A DNA stretch of 64,000 nt from positions 368,433 to 432,432 of the forward strand of contig OW569384.1 of the NCBI GenBank assembly GCA_937625935.1, written 5' to 3'. Under the pieces are notes generated by a model. That model made no database searches. It was given only the letters and a program-made list of their open reading frames with translations, and was not told where the DNA came from. Position numbers and translations under genes: made by a program. Shown in pieces: positions 5 to 54,072 of the stretch. Every line of letters starts with the position of its first letter. Within the stretch, counting starts at the first letter, position 1. This DNA is from Tetramitus jugosus. Taxonomy: Eukaryota; Protista; Heterolobosea.

Positions 5-1084
5 ATGAAGCGCGACAAGAAGGTGTATCAAGAGTTGGACAATGTTGGCGAAGAGATTCATGAAATTCGAGCAAAATTGAATGTGAGTGCACGAGCACAG
101 GAAATGTCTGGTAAGCCCTTGAACAAGAAGCAAGAACGAGAACAAAAGAAATTGAAATCAAAGTTGAGTGAACTGGAGAGAAGGAGTAGATATTTTGATG
201 AGAAACGAGGAAGTTGGATGCACAAGATGGAACCGTTCATGTATCCTGTTAAGTTTGTAATTGGCGTTCTGCTGTTGTTGTGCACTGTTGCAATTGTTGC
301 ATCCTTGATTATTACGCAGATTGATCGCGCAGTATTCAGTGAGTGTGGTATTCGATGTGGCTTTATTCTGAATAAGCACCACCCTTGGAACCCGCTTGAT
401 CTTTTGTTGACATATGCAAGCATTGCATTCCCTGTTGACTATGTACTCACTGGTCTATTTATCGCATTGTTCATGTTGGGATCACTTGTTGGACTGTCCA
501 ATATTGGAATTCGATTTTTGTTTATCAAGTTGTACAAGATTAAGTTCCGCAAGACTCTTCCACAGGGATTGTTGACCGGTTGTATATTTTTGATGTTTAT
601 CATCACGGTCTTTTCATTCTCTCTAGTGAGTTTTGCGCCTCAGTATGCCACATTTGGAAGTCAAAAGTATAGGGATGCACAAACAAACAAGCTAGTTGAC
701 TGCAATATGAATGCACTGTACAATGGTACTGTCACTCACAACAGTACACTCACAGAATATGATCCTATGGTGTTCAATTCTGGCTCTGTATATGTCGGTC
801 GTCCATGTTACATGTCTCAAATTGCTACTCTTGTGAATAGTGTGGCTGTTCGCGTGCCCGTGTTCAGTGCAATCTTCTATTTTGCAAACTGGGTGTTTGT
901 TGCCATGTATTTATTCTTTTTCGTTGTTGCTATCTTCAGAAGACCAGCTGTACTCATCAGTACAGAAGATTCTGATGACGAAGAAGAAGACCTGATCGAG
1001 AAAGAACCATTAACGAGAAGGAGAGAGTCAAGAACTCGCACTGTCAATGCAACGAGCAAATACTCGACAAACTATGATATATAA
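5..1084 (+). CDS. LMBR1-family multi-pass membrane protein (LMBD1/lysosomal cobalamin escort-like), C-terminal part; 5' end probably upstream of the window
   Basis: Coiled loop followed by several TM helices; motifs CGxxCGF..NPLD, FPVDY, GIRFLFIKLYKIK..T.PQGLL, APQY.TFGSQ; acidic C-tail with a DEEEDLI dileucine-like signal. Confidence 0.8.
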   Translation: MKRDKKVYQELDNVGEEIHEIRAKLNVSARAQEMSGKPLNKKQEREQKKLKSKLSELERRSRYFDEKRGSWMHKMEPFMYPVKFVIGVLLLLCTVAIVASLIITQIDRAVFSECGIRCGFILNKHHPWNPLDLLLTYASIAFPVDYVLTGLFIALFMLGSLVGLSNIGIRFLFIKLYKIKFRKTLPQGLLTGCIFLMFIITVFSFSLVSFAPQYATFGSQKYRDAQTNKLVDCNMNALYNGTVTHNSTLTEYDPMVFNSGSVYVGRPCYMSQIATLVNSVAVRVPVFSAIFYFANWVFVAMYLFFFVVAIFRRPAVLISTEDSDDEEEDLIEKEPLTRRRESRTRTVNATSKYSTNYDI

Positions 1085-47390: not shown

Positions 47391-47891
47391 TTACTCGGAT
47401 GGTGCACTTCTTGAGACTTGAGAAGCTGGCATCTCTTCGCCAGTCAAATCACCTTCCTTGCCCTTCTTGCCACCTGGAACAGCTCCAATCAATGACTTGT
47501 GAATGTGAGGAATGACACCACCACCTGCGATAGTACCCTTGATCAACTTGTCCAATTCTTCGTCACCTCTAATGGCCAATTGCAAATGTCTTGGTGTAAT
47601 TCTCTTGACCTTCAAATCCTTGGATGCATTACCTGCCAATTCCAAAACTTCAGCACACAAGTACTCGAGAATGGCAGCAGAGTAGACAGCAGAAGTAACA
47701 GCAACTCTGCTGGATCCGTGAACTCTGGATTTCAAATGTCTGTGGATTCTACCGACTGGGAATTGAAGACCAGCCTTGACAGAACGAGAGACTGGCTTGC
47801 TCTTTCTGGTGGAAGTCTTAGGGGTGCCAGTTGTTGTGGTGGCAGTTGGTGTTGAGTTGCTGATCTCTTGAGAGAGTTGAGTATCGGCCAT
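47391..47891 (-). CDS. H2AZ: Histone H2A.Z variant
   Basis: [70 protein letters not shown]. Confidence 0.95.
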
Positions 47892-48154
47892 GTTTTTTGT
47901 ACAAATGAAGAGGATGCTATCTAAAGCTTATGTGTGTAGTGGGGAGATGTAATTGTGTTTTATTAGGACGACATGAAACAGTCAAAATAAAAAATCAACA
48001 ACATCGCTCGATCCAAGCCAAATTAACGGAGAGAAAAAGTGTAACGTCAAAAACCTGGACAAAATTTATTTTTTCTTAGATCCGACGAAACGGATTTTGT
48101 TCTCGATTTTACGGAGAAATGAAAGGGTGTACCCCCTAAATTCATTCATTGAGT

Positions 48155-50895
48155 TTATTTGGAGAGGGTGTCAACTTGGCGCAAGATAACATCACATAGG
48201 AGCAGTTGGTTGACTTCAGAGACTGGAAGCGTCTTGAACTCTGTGGTTTGGATATCTACAACTTCGTCGACAACTCCCAACATGCTAGATGCAGAGTTTT
48301 GAACGAGGTTGCAATGTTGAGTGATGATTGCTTCCTTGGATGCTTGTGACATGACCACATCAGCATTAAACACGTTCTTTGCACCTGAGAATTCAGACAA
48401 ACTGCGGCAAGAGCGGACCATTGGCAAATGGAGACATTTGACAGATGTTATCTCATCAGAGCTAGATGTAATGTTTGTGTAAACATGAGACATATCGAAG
48501 AATCGAGGTCCATATCTCTCGTTGTTTGGCCCAATCATTGGGTTGGCACCTGTCAAGTTGGCATGATCAGAAATGTTGATCGCTTTACCCAACAGACCTG
48601 CATTCGTGGAGATGAATGCTTGAGTGAAGACAATGTGCTTCACTCCCAAGTGTTGGAGGAATCTTACATAGTTGCCCCAATCAATTTTCATCTCTTCTTG
48701 CTGTGCGTGATCAATATCGGTTGATTTAAGACTCACGGCATAGAATTTCTTGCCTTCGTGCTCAAGCAATAAAATCTCAGCATTTTGTCCAATTAATCGA
48801 GATGCATTGGTCAGTGGTTCCACATCAACAATAGCGACATTGCGCTTCTCGCTCAACAATTTGACTAAATTCAAATCATAGTCCACGAGTGCAAGTTGAG
48901 GGACTTGGTCTAGTTGAGACAAAACACGAGTGGCAACATCTTGAAGCGCGTCAAATGAGATATTAGTATCATACTTGACCTTTTGTTCCTTGATGGATTG
49001 AAGTCTTTGTTCCAATTGTTCATAATTCAGTTTTCCGAATTGGACATTGGATTGTTGCTTGACTGGTGCGATTTGAGCAACCAAATCAGTAATTGATGTC
49101 AAGTGGCGGCCTTGAGAGAGGTAGACAGAAACGTTCAATCCCAAGTATCTGGCAGCATAGACAGTCGCAACGGAAGTGGTTCCGACAAAGTCAACACCAA
49201 ACTTCTTAGCCATCTGGTATTCACCATTGGAAGGCTCAGATGGACCACAGAATGACATGTACGATGGAGAGTGCTTTTGATTTTCTTGGTAAGGGAACAA
49301 GAATTGCTTCTTTCCGATCGATCCATCATTCAAATAGATCAAATATGGATGGAGAGGGGAGGAGGTATCATGGAAATGATACAAATCATACAGTTGAATA
49401 GTTTCAGTACTAGTGATGCTGGCGCTTGATGATTCTAAAATAAATGAGAAAAATTGATTGTTGGGGGTGAGAACGTTATGAAAAATAAAAAATGATTATG
49501 CTTTCACACAGAAAAAGAAGCAAACAAGCACATACTTCCATGAACCGAATGAGACAGGTTAGAGATACCTAGCGAGTACAAAACAATGGAAATGAATGAT
49601 GACTCTTCAACGGTGAATCCCTCTTCGTCACCAGCAACCACGATCAATTCATTTTGATTGTTCAATGCAATGTAACCATAATTGGATCCGGAGCATCTGA
49701 TTGGGAATTTGTTTAAATCGACAATGGAGACTCTTGACTTGAATTGCTCCGTACCGTTCGTTCTAGGATAGCAAACAATGTATGCAGTGTCAGACAATGG
49801 ATTTTCAGTGCTAATGTTCAATGATTTCTGAATATCGGACACAGTCTCATCTACTGCACTCTTCAATTCAGCACTCGTGTCAGGGAACGATCGTCTCACA
49901 ATAGGTCTCAAAATGGTTTCACTCAAGTGATCAATAGGGACAATATCAGGATGGTTGTTCAAATAGTCACCGATATTCAACAAAACCTTCTTTAGCAGAG
50001 TTTTCAAATAGATGACAGATTTGTTGGCATTGGTGTACACTTCCTCGTGATTCAATTCACTGCTACTCAGACCAGCTGCCAAATTGGTAACCATAGATAT
50101 GCCCAGAACACTCATTCCATATGCATGAGCAGTCACAACTTCAGGAACAGTGCTCATACCGACACAGGCACCTCCCAGGTTCTTTGCAGTAATGACTTCC
50201 ATTGGTGTTTCGAATGAAGGTCCACTCGTCCAGACATAGCTTCCTTCAAACAGTTGAATACCTTCTTCCTTGGCAATGTTTCGTGTAATTTCATTGATTT
50301 CATTGTCCCAGTAAGGAGGAACATTGTCTTGTTGCTGTTCTTGCTGTTGTTCTTGTCTTCTTGCCTTGGCCAAAACTTGCTCTGGCAATTCAAATTCACT
50401 CAATGGATCCTTTCTTGCCATAAATCTAAAATGATCAGTCAATAGACAGAGACTACCCAGTCCCATACCATCCAACATTCCACCAGTTGCATTAGTGACA
50501 ATGTATAGCTTTGTACCGAGAGCAGCCAACAATCTCACAATAAAACAGACTTCTTGCCATGGGATGCCCTCATACGAGTGAACTCTACCAGCAAAACAGA
50601 GAACAAGTGGATTGTTGCTGCCATCGGTGGATTGTGGAGGTTTCATGAAACCACAGATCAATTGACCATGATGACTGGCAACAGTGACTTTTGGCATATG
50701 GGGAATGTGATCATAGTCAATGGTGACTGTTTCATGGAGAACTGATGGAAAATCGCCGAGTCCACTTCCTAACACGACACCGACAGAGTGGGATGACCAA
50801 CGATTGCTGAGTTCAGAGCGCACATAGTTGGCAGCTTGTTTGATTTGATCAATCTCTGATTGAATTTTTTGATTTTCGTTATTGTTGTGAGTCAT
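48155..50895 (-). CDS. PNP: Purine nucleoside phosphorylase (trimeric-type fold) with three tandem PNP domains, one intact and two degenerate; 2 exons (50895-49536, 49434-48155), 879 aa
   Basis: Domain 1: GSGLG, GRVHSYEG, TNATGG, GPSFET, VGMSTVPEV, TNLAAG, NHEEV. A 101-nt GTATGT..TTTTAG intron joins the 463-aa and 409-aa ORFs in frame. Domains 2 and 3 show PNP-like GPSE..E...G.D.VGTTSV..V.AAR..G and DHANLTG.NP.IGPN.ER.GPRF.DM. Confidence 0.85.
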
Positions 50896-51228
50896 GATTG
50901 TGTGTGTTTGTGTATGTATGTATGCGAGTGTGTGTAGGTGTGTCGATCTAAATTTCTTTTATCTATCTATATGTATAATTATGTACGAAAGAATCAAGTT
51001 TGTGTGTTTTTGTTTTTTCAACTTTTGGTGTATTGAGGATTGCAGCGACGTGTTTTTTTTACACTACGAGTTTGAGACAGAGACGGATTGCCTCTTCGAT
51101 TTCGAGGAGAAGTCTCGTTTTCTCCGTTTCTCCGATGAGCGAACTCCAAATGAACTAAAAGGTTTGTCCGCTTTTCATCTTCAACAACGAGTTCGCTGTC
51201 TGGCAAACACAACAACAAACTACACACA

Positions 51229-54072
51229 ATGAGCTCAGTAGCGATCCCTATGGAGGTTTTGTGCAATATCTTGTCGTTCCTACCGAATAGAAACCTGACA
51301 GAATGTGCCCTTGTTCACTCCGAATGGCACAATGCCTCTCGAATGACCTTTATTCAATATCGTATATCGAAGCGACTGTATGAACAATTGAGACAACAAG
51401 TGGCCACTGCTTATTCAGTGAATTCGGTTGATGATGAAAAGGGTGATAGGATAGATGATGATAGTGATGCTGATGAAACCGATGATGATCACAATCAACA
51501 GAAAGAGGAAAATGGACAAGAGGGAGTGATGGATGAAATGATGAGTGATTTAAATGCTCAGGGATACTTTGCCTTCTTTGTTAGAAATGTCATGTATCCT
51601 ATCCAACGAGCCATCACCAGTCAAAAGAACGTTGCAAGTGGCAAATCAAGTGGTTGTTTTATATCGAGTCCACCGTTGCATTTTCTGATCGATTCCGGTT
51701 TGAATTGTGAGGTACTGTTTGAACATTTGGTGAAAGCGAGCAGGAAGAGATTGGATGAAGTGGATCGTAATGGCAAGAACGCAATTCGTTTATTGTGCGA
51801 GCGATCAAAGGTTTCTCACATGTTTAGCAGAGAGTCCAGCACTGATTTGTTCTCAATATTGGTCGATCATATGAGTTCTTTTCTTCCTCCAAGTGATTAT
51901 AATAGTAGTTATGTGTATCGTCCAGTGGACACAGCAGCTTTCCTCGATTGTTTAGATAACTTGGCAATGAATAAGCGTTATGATTTATTGAAAATCATTC
52001 TGTCTTCCACTTTGGGTAGGAAAGCTGTTGCTTCTTCAACAGAGCCAATGAGTGTGTTATGGAAAGATAAAACATGGGAATTCTTGGATGAACATATGAG
52101 TGAAATTAAAGACTGCATAGAGTTGTTAGTCGAGAATGGTTATGATTGGAATTTGTATCCGTTGAATGCATGCCCTGTTCATATTGAAATCATCAAACAA
52201 ATGATGGAGTTGGGTGTTTGGAATAGTGCAAGAAAGAGTGCAGTCGAGCGGTTGATTCATTCAATTTTGCGTGCTGGGTTTCTAGAGGCATATGACTATA
52301 TGTTCACCTATTTACAGAGATATGATGCCAAAGGTCAAAAAGAGACGAGAAGAAAAAAGATTTTAGAGCTTTTAGATCCCAGAGTATCCTGGATGAACTC
52401 TCTCCATACAGCTGCTGCATCAGGCAAAGTTCCGATGGCGCAATATATTAGAAAACAAAATCCTACTCTAATTAATGCTCCCTATACTGAAGGCTCTTTG
52501 CCTCCATATTCGACACCATTGCTCATACCATTGCATTTCGCAGTGCAGGAAGGAAAGTCATTAGAGATGGTGAAATTCTTGTTTGAGAGTGGTGCTGATC
52601 CAATGGTGACAACAAGAGACAACTTCAACAGCATTCACTTGGCGTGTAAAGTTGGTTGTCTGGAAATATTTGAATACCTAAGGTCAGAAACAGGCGCCTC
52701 ATATCATATCCCATCAACCTCTGTACCTCTAACTATTGTTTCCAATTCGTTTCTATTGGCAGCATCACAACCCAACAACTACAGAATGATCCATTATATT
52801 TTATCCAATCGACCAGATGACATGTCAGCGGATGATATCTTACAAGAACATAACCGATCTGTGAGAAATGTATTGACTTTGATATGTAAGTCAAAGGTAA
52901 CAAATGCGAGAGAGGTATTCAATACAATCAAATATCTATTCTCATTTGGAATTACAAGCACGAAACTGTTTTCGGTGCAGGACGAGATGCACGCCAATGC
53001 GCGTGTGTATGCTCGGACGTTTATGCCGCCGTCAATTGTAACCCTCATGGATTATTATTGTTCATTAGAGAGTCATTTATTACCTATTGTAACATCCATT
53101 GACGGTTCAGGCATTCCATATTTATGTGAAGATACTAATATCATGGCTTACATCTGTGAGTCGGGTGATACAGATCTATTCAAGCATGCAAGGCAAAGTT
53201 CCATTTGGACGTTAGATATTTCAACTCCTATCCATATGTCAAATATCTTGATTGCTGCAGCATTTGGAGGTAATTCTTGCATTATTGAGAATGTGTTGGG
53301 AAGCATCGATCGTAGCGCAAACATAGATTGGTCTCGTGCAATTTGCAAAGCTACACAATCCTTTGTACAACCATCTGAAATTGTTAGAAACATTCAAATT
53401 ATTTTGAAAAGAGCATTTGAGTGTGGTTATAGGAACGATATTCATGGTAAAAAGTGGGTTAATGAGATCTTGGATGATGAGGTGTCCAGTTTCATTCGAG
53501 AGATTAGCGATTACAATCACCAGATTCATATTTCCATTCACATGAATGACATCGAATCAGTGAAGGAGATTCTCAAGAAAAATCAATCAACAGACTGGAA
53601 GTGTCACTCATTGAAGAAGGGCTCTGTTGACAGGCCAAGAACTGCCATTCAAATTGCTTGTTCCTTTGGAAATATGGAAGTAGTTCGACTTCTCATTGAG
53701 TCGGGCTCTTCAATTGATTACATGTGCTTTATGAATGCAGCAGCATCTTGCAACATTCAGCTTCTCAATCTCATTATTCAAAATTTGTCAGAGAGGGGTG
53801 TTGTGGATTTAACGAAACAGCTTGGAAATCAAACTGTATTGCATTATGTGCTCTTAAACTCAAGTGAAATGTACGAAGCAACCATACAATGTATTGCCTT
53901 TCTCATTCGTAGCGGGTGTTTCAAATGTTTATCGATGGCAGATGGTGATGGATTGACTCCTGTTGATCTAGCGCAAATGATTAACGAAAAGATGCACCAA
54001 TATTTGAGTTTTGTGAGGGATATCTATCAGATTCGTCAATTTTCAAATCAGAAACACTTATCCGTGGTGTAG
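51229..54072 (+). CDS. F-box + ankyrin-repeat protein
   Basis: N-terminal IPMEVLCNILSFLP...L.....V...W F-box; ankyrin motifs LHTAAASG, PLHFAV, IHLACKVG, TAIQIACSFGN, GLTPVDLA. Confidence 0.85.
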   Translation: MSSVAIPMEVLCNILSFLPNRNLTECALVHSEWHNASRMTFIQYRISKRLYEQLRQQVATAYSVNSVDDEKGDRIDDDSDADETDDDHNQQKEENGQEGVMDEMMSDLNAQGYFAFFVRNVMYPIQRAITSQKNVASGKSSGCFISSPPLHFLIDSGLNCEVLFEHLVKASRKRLDEVDRNGKNAIRLLCERSKVSHMFSRESSTDLFSILVDHMSSFLPPSDYNSSYVYRPVDTAAFLDCLDNLAMNKRYDLLKIILSSTLGRKAVASSTEPMSVLWKDKTWEFLDEHMSEIKDCIELLVENGYDWNLYPLNACPVHIEIIKQMMELGVWNSARKSAVERLIHSILRAGFLEAYDYMFTYLQRYDAKGQKETRRKKILELLDPRVSWMNSLHTAAASGKVPMAQYIRKQNPTLINAPYTEGSLPPYSTPLLIPLHFAVQEGKSLEMVKFLFESGADPMVTTRDNFNSIHLACKVGCLEIFEYLRSETGASYHIPSTSVPLTIVSNSFLLAASQPNNYRMIHYILSNRPDDMSADDILQEHNRSVRNVLTLICKSKVTNAREVFNTIKYLFSFGITSTKLFSVQDEMHANARVYARTFMPPSIVTLMDYYCSLESHLLPIVTSIDGSGIPYLCEDTNIMAYICESGDTDLFKHARQSSIWTLDISTPIHMSNILIAAAFGGNSCIIENVLGSIDRSANIDWSRAICKATQSFVQPSEIVRNIQIILKRAFECGYRNDIHGKKWVNEILDDEVSSFIREISDYNHQIHISIHMNDIESVKEILKKNQSTDWKCHSLKKGSVDRPRTAIQIACSFGNMEVVRLLIESGSSIDYMCFMNAAASCNIQLLNLIIQNLSERGVVDLTKQLGNQTVLHYVLLNSSEMYEATIQCIAFLIRSGCFKCLSMADGDGLTPVDLAQMINEKMHQYLSFVRDIYQIRQFSNQKHLSVV

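Follow-up and report, generated by a model that had tools for sequence, protein, structure and literature searches.

The locus described here raises the question of whether two neighbouring open reading frames of the soil amoeba Tetramitus jugosus encode a single protein made of three purine nucleoside phosphorylase (PNP) domains, and what two catalytically dead copies would do beside one live copy. The window, by which we mean the whole 64,000-nt stretch of DNA analysed, had previously been read from sequence alone. That preliminary description joined the two frames across a 101-nt intron (49435-49535) into an 879-aa protein with three successive PNP-fold repeats. It further inferred that gene triplication had produced a covalent, asymmetric pseudo-trimer with one active site, the dead domains serving as structural or allosteric subunits. 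We consider it likely that this 879-residue PNP is a fused pseudo-trimer with a live domain 1 (D1) and two conserved pseudoenzyme domains (D2 and D3); the packing, the identity of the capping domain and the activity are inferred.

Gene structure and expression are shown directly: this is one spliced, expressed nuclear gene that yields an 879-residue three-domain protein (Table 1). On the minus strand the intron opens with GTATGT and closes with TTTTAG. The in-frame stop at which the unspliced ORF terminates (49504-49506) lies inside it, and joining the exons restores the frame (...VHG/K/SSSAS...). Assembled RNA contigs from four runs, belonging to four different studies, skip exactly these 101 positions (CT..AC); two of the runs are metatranscriptome libraries (one oligo-dT), and two carry an RNA label that was only guessed. 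Both ORFs are spanned by three single contigs (X1, 48084-50891; X4, 48149-50891; X7, 48166-50568). An 879-aa protein from a public metatranscriptome collection (P0003) equals exon 1 plus Lys plus exon 2 save for one residue, with 453/453 identities to exon 1, Lys at 454 and 424/425 identities to exon 2 (E673D). Full-length analyses were run on P0003, one residue off the window product, and the exons were searched separately. Both the intron and the protein length proposed earlier thus held.

Table 1. Features of the fused PNP gene and its product (positions within the window).
Feature	Position	Strand	Extent	Description	Basis
ORF 1	50895-49504	minus	463 aa		ORF listing confirmed
ORF 2	49384-48155	minus	409 aa		ORF listing confirmed
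Exon 1	49536..50895	minus	residues 1-453 and first base of Lys454 codon	start codon 50895-50893	ORF listing, RNA contigs, P0003
Intron	49435..49535	minus	101 nt	GT..AG, phase 1	sequence and RNA contigs
Exon 2	48155..49434	minus	last two bases of Lys454 codon, residues 455-879	stop 48155-48157	
Domain 1	49948..50808	minus	residues about 30-316	trimeric-class PNP domain, all catalytic and phosphate-binding residues	
Domain 2	49070..49890	minus	residues about 336-575, intron-interrupted	degenerate PNP fold without C-terminal helix	
Domain 3	48158..48982	minus	residues about 605-879	degenerate PNP fold, catalytic residues lost, central inter-subunit loop kept	
D3 inter-subunit ('donor') loop	48479..48568	minus	residues 743-772	DHANLTGANPMIGPNNERYGPRFFDMSHVY	

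The alternative at this level is that the frames encode two separate proteins, or that an unspliced transcript is translated only as far as the stop codon at 49504 and yields 463 aa, making the 879-aa protein an artefact. In its favour, the unspliced ORF does stop inside the intron, and contigs cannot rule out a minor intron-retaining form. Against it, transcripts ending at that stop, an outcome that would have refuted the single-protein reading, were not seen among the contigs: only the joined form appeared, in 4/4 runs, and the three contigs named above cover both ORFs. In the related contig L001 the intron is missing from this site and the frame runs uninterrupted through domain 2, full-length homologues of 820-900 aa occur in many species, and two proteins would mean a domain 2 split in half. 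Two separate genes are contradicted by the spliced RNA contigs, and we regard this whole alternative as all but excluded. In another related contig (L002) the intron lies at the same place, and the H2A neighbour is the same as well.

Searches with D1 identified an intact PNP. It matched Pfam PF01048 at E 1.5e-33 (116.6 bits; cut-off 25.1) and exceeded the NCBIfam cut-offs for NF006054 (239.4 bits; cut-off 218) and TIGR01697 (207.1 bits; cut-off 197.1). PNPs in the PDB were reached at 9e-43 by phmmer, 8swu_A at E 9.2e-24 by Foldseek (TM by target 0.90), and VIA returned a match at Z 27.6. Residues 31-294 align by phmmer with positions 20-268 of human PNP chains, and the residue offsets agree: S44, H75, R104, H106 and Y108 correspond to human S33, H64, R84, H86 and Y88, and E229, M247, S248, N271 and H283 to human E201, M219, S220, N243 and H257. 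All 14 residues checked are present (human S33, H64, R84, H86, Y88, E89, N115, A116, F200, E201, M219, S220, N243 and H257), and the binding and catalytic residues among them are nearly all invariant across 42 long homologues. From these residues, without activity data, we infer that D1 is the sole catalytic unit, with a full phosphate, ribose and 6-oxopurine site that includes Asn243 and Glu201. Inosine/guanosine phosphorolysis by D1 is likewise an inference from the intact site, in which Asn243 and Glu201 would serve 6-oxopurines. D1 also keeps Glu205 (E233) and Ser199 (S227). The inter-subunit loop and Phe159 are absent, and residues 166-196 instead form a Gln-rich, variable insert (conservation 0.20). 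A homotrimer of D1 with D2 and D3 as mere appendages was rejected, D1 being without the homotrimer loop.

According to the residue table, neither D2 nor D3 has the catalytic and phosphate-binding residues of D1. D2 has none of the phosphate-binding residues, and Pro521 stands at the Glu201 position, with proline there in 28/31 homologues. The interface motifs EGF and GPSxPTxAE are retained, with E525 equivalent to human E205, and the loop has a Phe (F500), moderately conserved, close to the position of Phe159. Some pocket-lining positions are kept, namely the Tyr192 equivalent in 19/31 homologues and Thr/Ser at the 220 and 221 equivalents in 19/31 and 18/31. An AF2 model of D2 alone (pLDDT 87.3, pTM 0.88) gave a Foldseek list whose top 50 entries were all trimeric PNPs (best E 1.8e-12, TM by query 0.59-0.69). 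By sequence, D2 reached 4uc0 with phmmer (2.9e-4) and the NCBIfam PNP models at 1e-5, under cut-off.

D3 matched xanthosine phosphorylase 3odg by phmmer at 4.9e-9 (chain residues 107-269). Among NCBIfam models it matched NF006054 (E 2.1e-14) and positions 72-242 of 248 of the XAPA model, both under cut-off. The D3 part of the full model (624-879) matched the MTA/SAH nucleosidase 4pr3_B, of the NP-I fold, at VIA Z 10.8. That search used the whole model, so its list was mostly D1, with D3 matches at Z 10.8 or below; there was no D3-only model. Alignment to human/calf PNP residues 100-168 placed the D3 loop as the equivalent of human residues 134-166, with F765 as Phe159. No part of D3 is better conserved than this loop, where the top residue has a mean frequency of 0.71 and 0.62; the figure for the domain as a whole is 0.32. 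In 31 homologues the key loop positions recur as D743 (27), H744 (27), N746 (25), G755 (28), R764 (28), F765 (28) and D767 (27). An exon-2 query retrieved 977 matches at E<=0.001, and the listed single-domain ones align mainly at this loop. Taken claim by claim, the preliminary description fared well here: three successive PNP-fold repeats held (profile homology, Foldseek for D1 and D2, VIA and profiles for D3), as did every motif and residue equivalent named for D1 and the loss of these residues from D2 and D3. The refuting outcome of segments without a PNP fold failed to appear, since both dead domains match PNP/NP-I folds.

Profile comparisons with hhalign related the domains to one another (D1-D2 99.5%, E 2.2e-22; D1-D3 99.7%, E 1.2e-25 over 220 columns; D2-D3 99.0%). 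A per-segment PF01048 scan, by contrast with D1, left D2 and D3 below threshold (16.1 and 12.7 bits), which is why databases see one domain. When the full model was searched by structure against the ESM Atlas, the sole match, to an arthropod PNP cluster, was the size of D1 (TM by query 0.31), and no cluster with three domains turned up. An Atlas feature search with residues 335-879 returned PF01048 clusters in 30/30 matches (score about 0.90), which is weak evidence at family level only.

Domain-specific competing HMMs recovered the D1-D2-D3 order in the window protein and 46 others, so that at least 47 such proteins were retrieved and the design recurs in many other protists. They come from Naegleria, including Naegleria fowleri with the same architecture, and from Willaertia, Acrasis, Planoprotostelium, Pygsuia, Lapot and Bolivina. 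Family members share Pro at the Glu201 position and E525 in D2, and the DHxNxxGxNPLxGxN...GxRF loop in D3. Some members have extra domains; a Planoprotostelium protein of 1300 aa includes a histidine-phosphatase domain. A tree was built from the three domains of 28 proteins together with 20 single-domain PNPs; in it, each domain set is separated from the rest by a single branch (SH-aLRT 100 for D1, 97 for D2 and 77 for D3). The tree supports a single ancient triplication of a trimeric-class (inosine/guanosine-type) PNP, as had been proposed. We conclude that the fused D1-D2-D3 PNP is a widespread, old eukaryotic family and not peculiar to the Tetramitus jugosus genome. The suggestion that the architecture was undescribed held in part: the literature searched contains no description of a multi-domain PNP, but public databases already hold family members, labelled plain PNP or hypothetical and with one recognised domain. 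Besides the fused gene, the organism's own genome has only MTAP-like and uridine-phosphorylase-like genes. As its sole trimeric-class PNP, the fused protein presumably carries purine-nucleoside salvage and catabolism.

The arrangement of the three domains is less directly supported. The full-length AF2 model is compact (pLDDT 84.4, pTM 0.89, 879 residues), and a pTM of 0.89 would be unreachable with three domains of uncertain relative placement. In calf PNP, the interface is formed by loop 141-168 against segments 87-91 and 196-205 (PMC9916683), and these known trimer-interface elements are conserved in complementary fashion between the domains. Among the loops, conservation is 0.71/0.62 in D3, 0.51/0.20 in D1 and 0.35/0.15 in D2; among the receiving sides it is 0.80/0.76 in D1, 0.45/0.57 in D2 and 0.22/0.31 in D3. 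Conservation within D2 and D3 is centred on the known subunit-interface segments, not on the pocket. The claim of a covalent, asymmetric pseudo-trimer thus has only indirect support, from pTM and interface conservation: trimer-like geometry remains an inference, coordinates and inter-domain contacts not having been inspected, and AlphaFold may merely echo a learned PNP trimer interface.

We propose that the three domains pack in one chain like the three subunits of a homotrimer, and that the dead D2 and D3 would give the live site the support that a PNP active site has to receive from the adjacent subunit. The D3 loop corresponds to human residues 134-166, which include Phe159; in the homotrimer this element packs against segments 87-91 and 196-205 in the active site of the following subunit. 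Written from loop giver to receiver, the cyclic order with the best internal consistency would be D3 to D1, D1 to D2 and D2 to D3. The loop lost from D1 would have pointed at a dead site, and the gene would give a 'monomer' of about 97 kDa that has a single active site. Phe159 is the sole active-site residue that a PNP subunit receives from its neighbour, and a monomerised calf PNP mutant is inactive (PMC9916683). By analogy, a scaffolding role of D2 and D3 would fit that inactivity, so the proposal of structural subunits is compatible with what is known; for an allosteric role we found no evidence. In human PNP, Phe159Ala hardly alters activity (PMC9916683), and the loop as a whole may possibly count for more than Phe159 itself. 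PNP subunits have also been described as acting independently (PMC9916683), which leaves the argument that one site is enough unsettled.

A rival arrangement keeps the fused pseudo-trimer and its one active site and reverses the order: the weakly conserved D2 loop (F500) would cap the D1 site, and the D3 loop would clasp the GPSxPTxAE/EGF face of D2 in a purely structural role. In its support, the D2 loop does have a conserved Phe at about the Phe159 position, and the D3 loop and the D2 receiving face, which stand out as the most conserved islands in the dead domains, are possible partners. Calf Asn137 and Asn145 pair with the neighbour's Asn199 and Glu205, and D3 keeps N746 and N751 while D2 keeps E525. 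On the other side, D1 too retains the Glu205 and Ser199 equivalents, and the live site would adjoin the protein's least conserved loop. We hold the reversed order to be unlikely, and it is not excluded.

A different rival makes D2, D3 or both into ligand-binding regulatory modules (nucleoside/base sensing) or protein-docking modules, in chains that may form higher oligomers. It could draw on the partly kept pocket-lining positions of D2, on the very long retention of both dead domains in many lineages, and on the additional domains of some members, such as that of Planoprotostelium. However, every phosphate-binding residue is lost from D2 and D3, their conservation lies on interface segments and not on the pocket, and nothing points directly to a ligand. 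This reading seems to us very unlikely.

We therefore keep to the fused pseudo-trimer in which D3 would cap D1. A bolder version, towards which we lean only slightly, is that this is a natural, covalently fused, pseudo-heterotrimeric PNP found in many eukaryotic lineages (Heterolobosea, with Naegleria fowleri, Amoebozoa, Breviatea and Rhizaria) and dating to early eukaryote evolution. Three former subunits would have divided the work among them: catalysis (D1), an active-site loop provided in trans (D3) and a receiving scaffold (D2).

Known systems share parts of this design. In trimeric PNPs (human/calf, PDB 1ULA, 1PBN, 8SWU; TIGR01697 PNPH-PUNA-XAPA), D1 finds its own fold, family cut-offs and full catalytic set; D2 and D3 come from the same family, with recognisable interface elements (loop 134-166, segments 87-91 and 196-205). 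Those enzymes have three identical subunits and three sites, whereas the fused protein has three unequal domains, one chain and one site. Each homotrimer subunit gives its 141-168 loop (Phe159) to the next site, a feature that D1 fails; the catalytic domain is without the donor loop, one dead domain has it, and the other has the receiving face. XapA, or PNP-II, of E. coli (PDB 1YQQ, 3ODG) belongs to the same trimeric-class family and provides the top single-sequence PDB match of D3, but is a single-domain, fully catalytic homo-oligomer. Cyanuric acid hydrolase and barbiturase are single chains with three homologous domains around one active site (cf. PMC4051656). The principle is shared, internal triplication leading to a pseudo-threefold chain with a single active site, but fold and chemistry are unrelated, and in those enzymes all three repeats contribute to the site, which sits on the pseudo-threefold axis; the site of the fused PNP is inferred to lie inside one domain, at an interface. 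The AdoMetDC prozyme of trypanosomatids is a dead-paralogue activator, a separate polypeptide that forms a heterodimer. It is likewise a dead enzyme copy kept because the live copy needs a partner; the fused PNP differs in having two dead copies, fused in cis.

For decades there has been debate over the reason that PNP has to be trimeric, and over whether its three active sites operate independently or only one at a time (the 'one-third-the-sites' inhibition by transition-state analogues). Having kept one site, together with one neighbour's loop and the other's receiving face, the fused PNP offers a natural asymmetric system in which to ask this, and each of its interfaces can be mutated separately, as is impossible in a homotrimer. 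The family also marks an annotation gap, with about 550 residues per protein unexplained. The PNP of Naegleria fowleri is inferred to differ in quaternary structure from its human counterpart, which may bear on selective inhibition; we mean this as description only. If the bolder reading is true, the family would amount to an experiment of nature, demonstrating that one live site is enough for a PNP trimer and that the other two subunits are an obligatory scaffold.

The region 48155-50895 is very likely one gene. The preliminary description had joined two reading frames, of 463 and 409 aa, by removing a 101-nt intron, and this held. Removal of the intron joins ...SVHG + K + SSSASITS... in frame, and expression was assessed by comparing 3,201 bases (47900-51100) with assembled contigs from four runs of four studies. 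Two of the runs were metatranscriptome RNA-Seq libraries, one of which was oligo-dT; for the other two, the RNA label is only guessed. A contig skipping exactly 49435-49535 was present in all four runs, and in three cases (X1, X4, X7) both reading frames were covered by a single contig. No unspliced contig was seen among the assembled contigs of the four runs, so that transcripts ending at the 49504 stop, which would have meant two genes, found no support; since the evidence consists of assembled contigs, it does not rule out a rare form that retains the intron. Further support comes from P0003 (879 aa), a protein that an exhaustive search with exon 2 found in a public metatranscriptome collection. 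With the exons searched separately, it agrees with exon 1 at 453/453 positions and with exon 2 at 424/425, and its residue 454 is Lys. Full-length analyses used P0003, which is one substitution (E673D) away from the window product.

Two related environmental contigs bear on the intron's history. L002 has an intron at the same position and also shares the downstream H2A gene, so that the PNP-H2A pairing is kept. L001 (52% identical) reads continuously through the junction and has reading-frame breaks, probably introns, at about 1580-1660 and 2257-2274; intron positions of this gene thus turn over between close relatives. Upstream, a divergent spacer of roughly 330 bp, which holds a GT/GTAT repeat, separates the gene from a 947-aa reading frame. 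The transcript's 5' end is unresolved because 50892-50936 is repeat-masked and RNA contigs stop there. In the X7 run (the oligo-dT metatranscriptome), one contig folds back at an 'opposite strands' joint (50568/50692); it was seen in that run only and is most likely an assembly or library artefact.

Features of the fused PNP gene, its neighbourhood, its product and related loci
Feature	Location	Strand	Remarks
Fused PNP gene	window 48155-50895	minus	PF01048 locus
Intron	window 49535 down to 49435	minus	101 nt; GTATGT...TTTTAG; phase 1
RNA contig X1	window 48084-49434 and 49536-50891		across both ORFs
RNA contig X4	window 48149-50891		across both ORFs
RNA contig X7	window 48166-50568		across both ORFs
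H2A/H2A.Z-like histone gene	window 47391-47891	minus	directly downstream of PNP gene, same strand
GT/GTAT-rich simple repeat	window 50892-50940		begins right at PNP start codon
947-aa ORF	window 51229-54072	plus	divergent from PNP gene; ankyrin-repeat-like by eye
D1	residues about 30-316		PF01048 E 1.5e-33
D2	residues about 336-575		intron-split; marginal alone, Pfam 16.1 bits
D3	residues about 605-879		xanthosine phosphorylase 3odg 4.9e-9, chain residues 107-269
H2A gene	L002:2790-3311		paired with PNP gene
PNP homologue	L001:1044-3782		no intron at the window's site
MTAP-like, 305 aa	G000:C16:509781-510533 (L009)		PF01048 locus
Uridine-phosphorylase-like	G000:C45:80367-80939 (L011)		PF01048 locus; apparently intron-interrupted

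The encoded chain very likely comprises three PNP-derived domains (D1-D3), as had been claimed. D1 is strong in the per-segment HMM scan, exceeding the curated NCBIfam cut-off for purine-nucleoside phosphorylase (NF006054; 239.4 bits vs 218) and that of the inosine/guanosine/xanthosine phosphorylase subfamily (TIGR01697; 207.1 vs 197.1). It matches solved PNPs both by sequence (9e-43) and by structure within the full-length model (Foldseek E 9.2e-24, TM by target 0.90; VIA Z 27.6). D2 is marginal in Pfam and against PDB sequences (2.9e-4 to 4uc0, across the GPS...G(M/T)(S/T) stretch), and the long helix at the C terminus of the PNP fold is missing from it. A D2-only AlphaFold model from 31 homologues (pLDDT 87.3, pTM 0.88) nevertheless found trimeric PNPs as all 50 of its best 50 Foldseek PDB matches (best E 1.8e-12, TM by query 0.59-0.69). 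D3 matches NCBIfam PNP models (2.1e-14), and its portion of the full model resembles an NP-I nucleosidase (Z 10.8). The possibility that the second and third segments do not adopt a PNP fold was therefore not borne out. When the family alignment (42 sequences) was cut into one sub-alignment per domain, profile-profile comparison gave probabilities of 99.5% for D1-D2 (E 2.2e-22), 99.7% for D1-D3 (E 1.2e-25) and 99.0% for D2-D3 (E 5.1e-18). The order of secondary structures also recurs three times in the full model.

Human numbering was transferred to D1 by offsets consistent with a phmmer alignment to human chains (31-294 vs 20-268). D1 keeps S44, H75, R104, H106, Y108, E109, N135, A136, Y220, F228, E229, M247, S248, N271 and H283, equivalent to human S33, H64, R84, H86, Y88, E89, N115, A116, Y192, F200, E201, M219, S220, N243 and H257; almost every one of them is invariant in 42 long homologues. 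D1 is likely the only catalytic domain, although activity is inferred from the intact site. Mapped onto D1 via profile alignments, D2 has no equivalents of S33, H64, R84, H86, Y88, N115, M219 and N243, and carries Pro at the Glu201 position in 28/31 homologues. D3 has lost all catalytic positions. The proposed degeneracy of D2 and D3 accordingly held for catalytic residues, but both keep other conserved residues. D2 retains the equivalents of Glu205 (E525, 30/31 homologues) and Pro198 (P518), the Glu89-Gly90 'EGF' motif and often Tyr192. D3 retains His135 (H744) and the entire loop DHxNxxGxNPLxGxN...GxRF(P/F)DxSxxY, among them R764 and F765 (R158 and F159 in human PNP; 28/31 homologues). In D1 the second loop half is a variable insert, Gln-rich in T. 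jugosus and without a Phe159 equivalent, and all that the D2 loop region keeps is a Phe of moderate conservation (F500). Only D3 preserves the complete loop; given F500, this is not strictly so for the Phe.

In calf PNP, the subunit interface is formed mainly where the long loop 141-168 of one subunit meets segments 87-91 and 196-205 of its neighbour, with Asn199 and Glu205 paired by Asn137 and Asn145, and Phe159 is the sole active-site residue contributed by a neighbour (PMC9916683). A mutant with six alanines at the interface is an inactive monomer, because the neighbour stabilises site geometry (PMC9916683). We measured conservation of these elements as mean top-residue frequency in 28 full-length homologues. 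For D1, the loop halves scored 0.51 and 0.20, the receiving segments 0.80 and 0.76, and the whole domain 0.50; the corresponding values were 0.35, 0.15, 0.45, 0.57 and 0.30 for D2, and 0.71, 0.62, 0.22, 0.31 and 0.32 for D3. The conserved islands of the dead domains are therefore interface elements. In the putative ring, the D3 loop would serve the live site in D1, the reduced D1 loop would go to D2, and the D2-to-D3 contact would be the least constrained. We lean modestly towards D3 capping the D1 site; the ring direction is inferred, and a ring running the other way is retained as the rival reading. AlphaFold modelled the full-length chain with a mean pLDDT of 84.4 and a pTM of 0.89, a value that, by inference from the definition of pTM, would be unreachable with uncertain domain placement because pTM integrates pairwise error chain-wide. 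Trimer-like packing within one chain is likely, with threefold geometry inferred rather than read from coordinates. An alternative is a D1 homotrimer bearing D2 and D3 as appendages; this is unlikely because the loop that makes the homotrimer is absent from D1. The main points of the proposed fused pseudo-trimer with one active site are thus supported.

Among the named relatives, heteroloboseans are the closest. Long homologues were found in Acrasis kona (821 aa, 35% identity), Naegleria fowleri (890 aa), Naegleria lovaniensis (895 aa), Willaertia magna (869 aa), Pygsuia biforma (824 aa), Lapot gusevi (899 aa), Bolivina argentea (1156 aa), 'Eukaryota sp. GEM-RC1' (869 aa), the amoebozoan Planoprotostelium fungivorum (1300 aa) and two MMETSP transcriptomes. 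Domain-specific HMMs built from the family and run competitively on 262 retrieved proteins recovered the D1-D2-D3 order in 47, from several lineages; other multi-domain patterns were mostly fragment-like, and an Andalucia godoyi protein (702 aa) has D1 and D3 only. A maximum-likelihood tree of 84 domains and 20 single-domain PNPs placed D1, D2 and D3 in one group each (SH-aLRT 100, 97 and 77), indicating that triplication, as had been inferred, and the division of roles are older than the split of these lineages. The tree search was quick and many branches are long, so nothing finer is drawn from it. In the P. fungivorum protein (P0169), D1-D2-D3 occupies residues 23-822, and the roughly 480 residues beyond include a histidine-phosphatase domain (PF00328).

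The preliminary description knew of no account of this architecture, and we found no description of a multi-domain or pseudo-trimeric PNP in the literature searched, most subscription journals being outside its scope; this silence is absence of evidence only. Databases already list members, each with one Pfam domain, under the names 'purine nucleoside phosphorylase' or 'hypothetical protein'. We therefore regard the three-domain PNP as a variant of a known enzyme and not a new kind of system. The extra fusion in P0169 might point to a pathway linking nucleotide to base. The 26.35 Mb T. jugosus assembly (56 contigs) has only three PF01048 loci, and the fused protein is the organism's only trimeric-class PNP, since the other two are MTAP-like and uridine-phosphorylase-like. 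It thus likely does the normal salvage job, although this is inferred without activity data.
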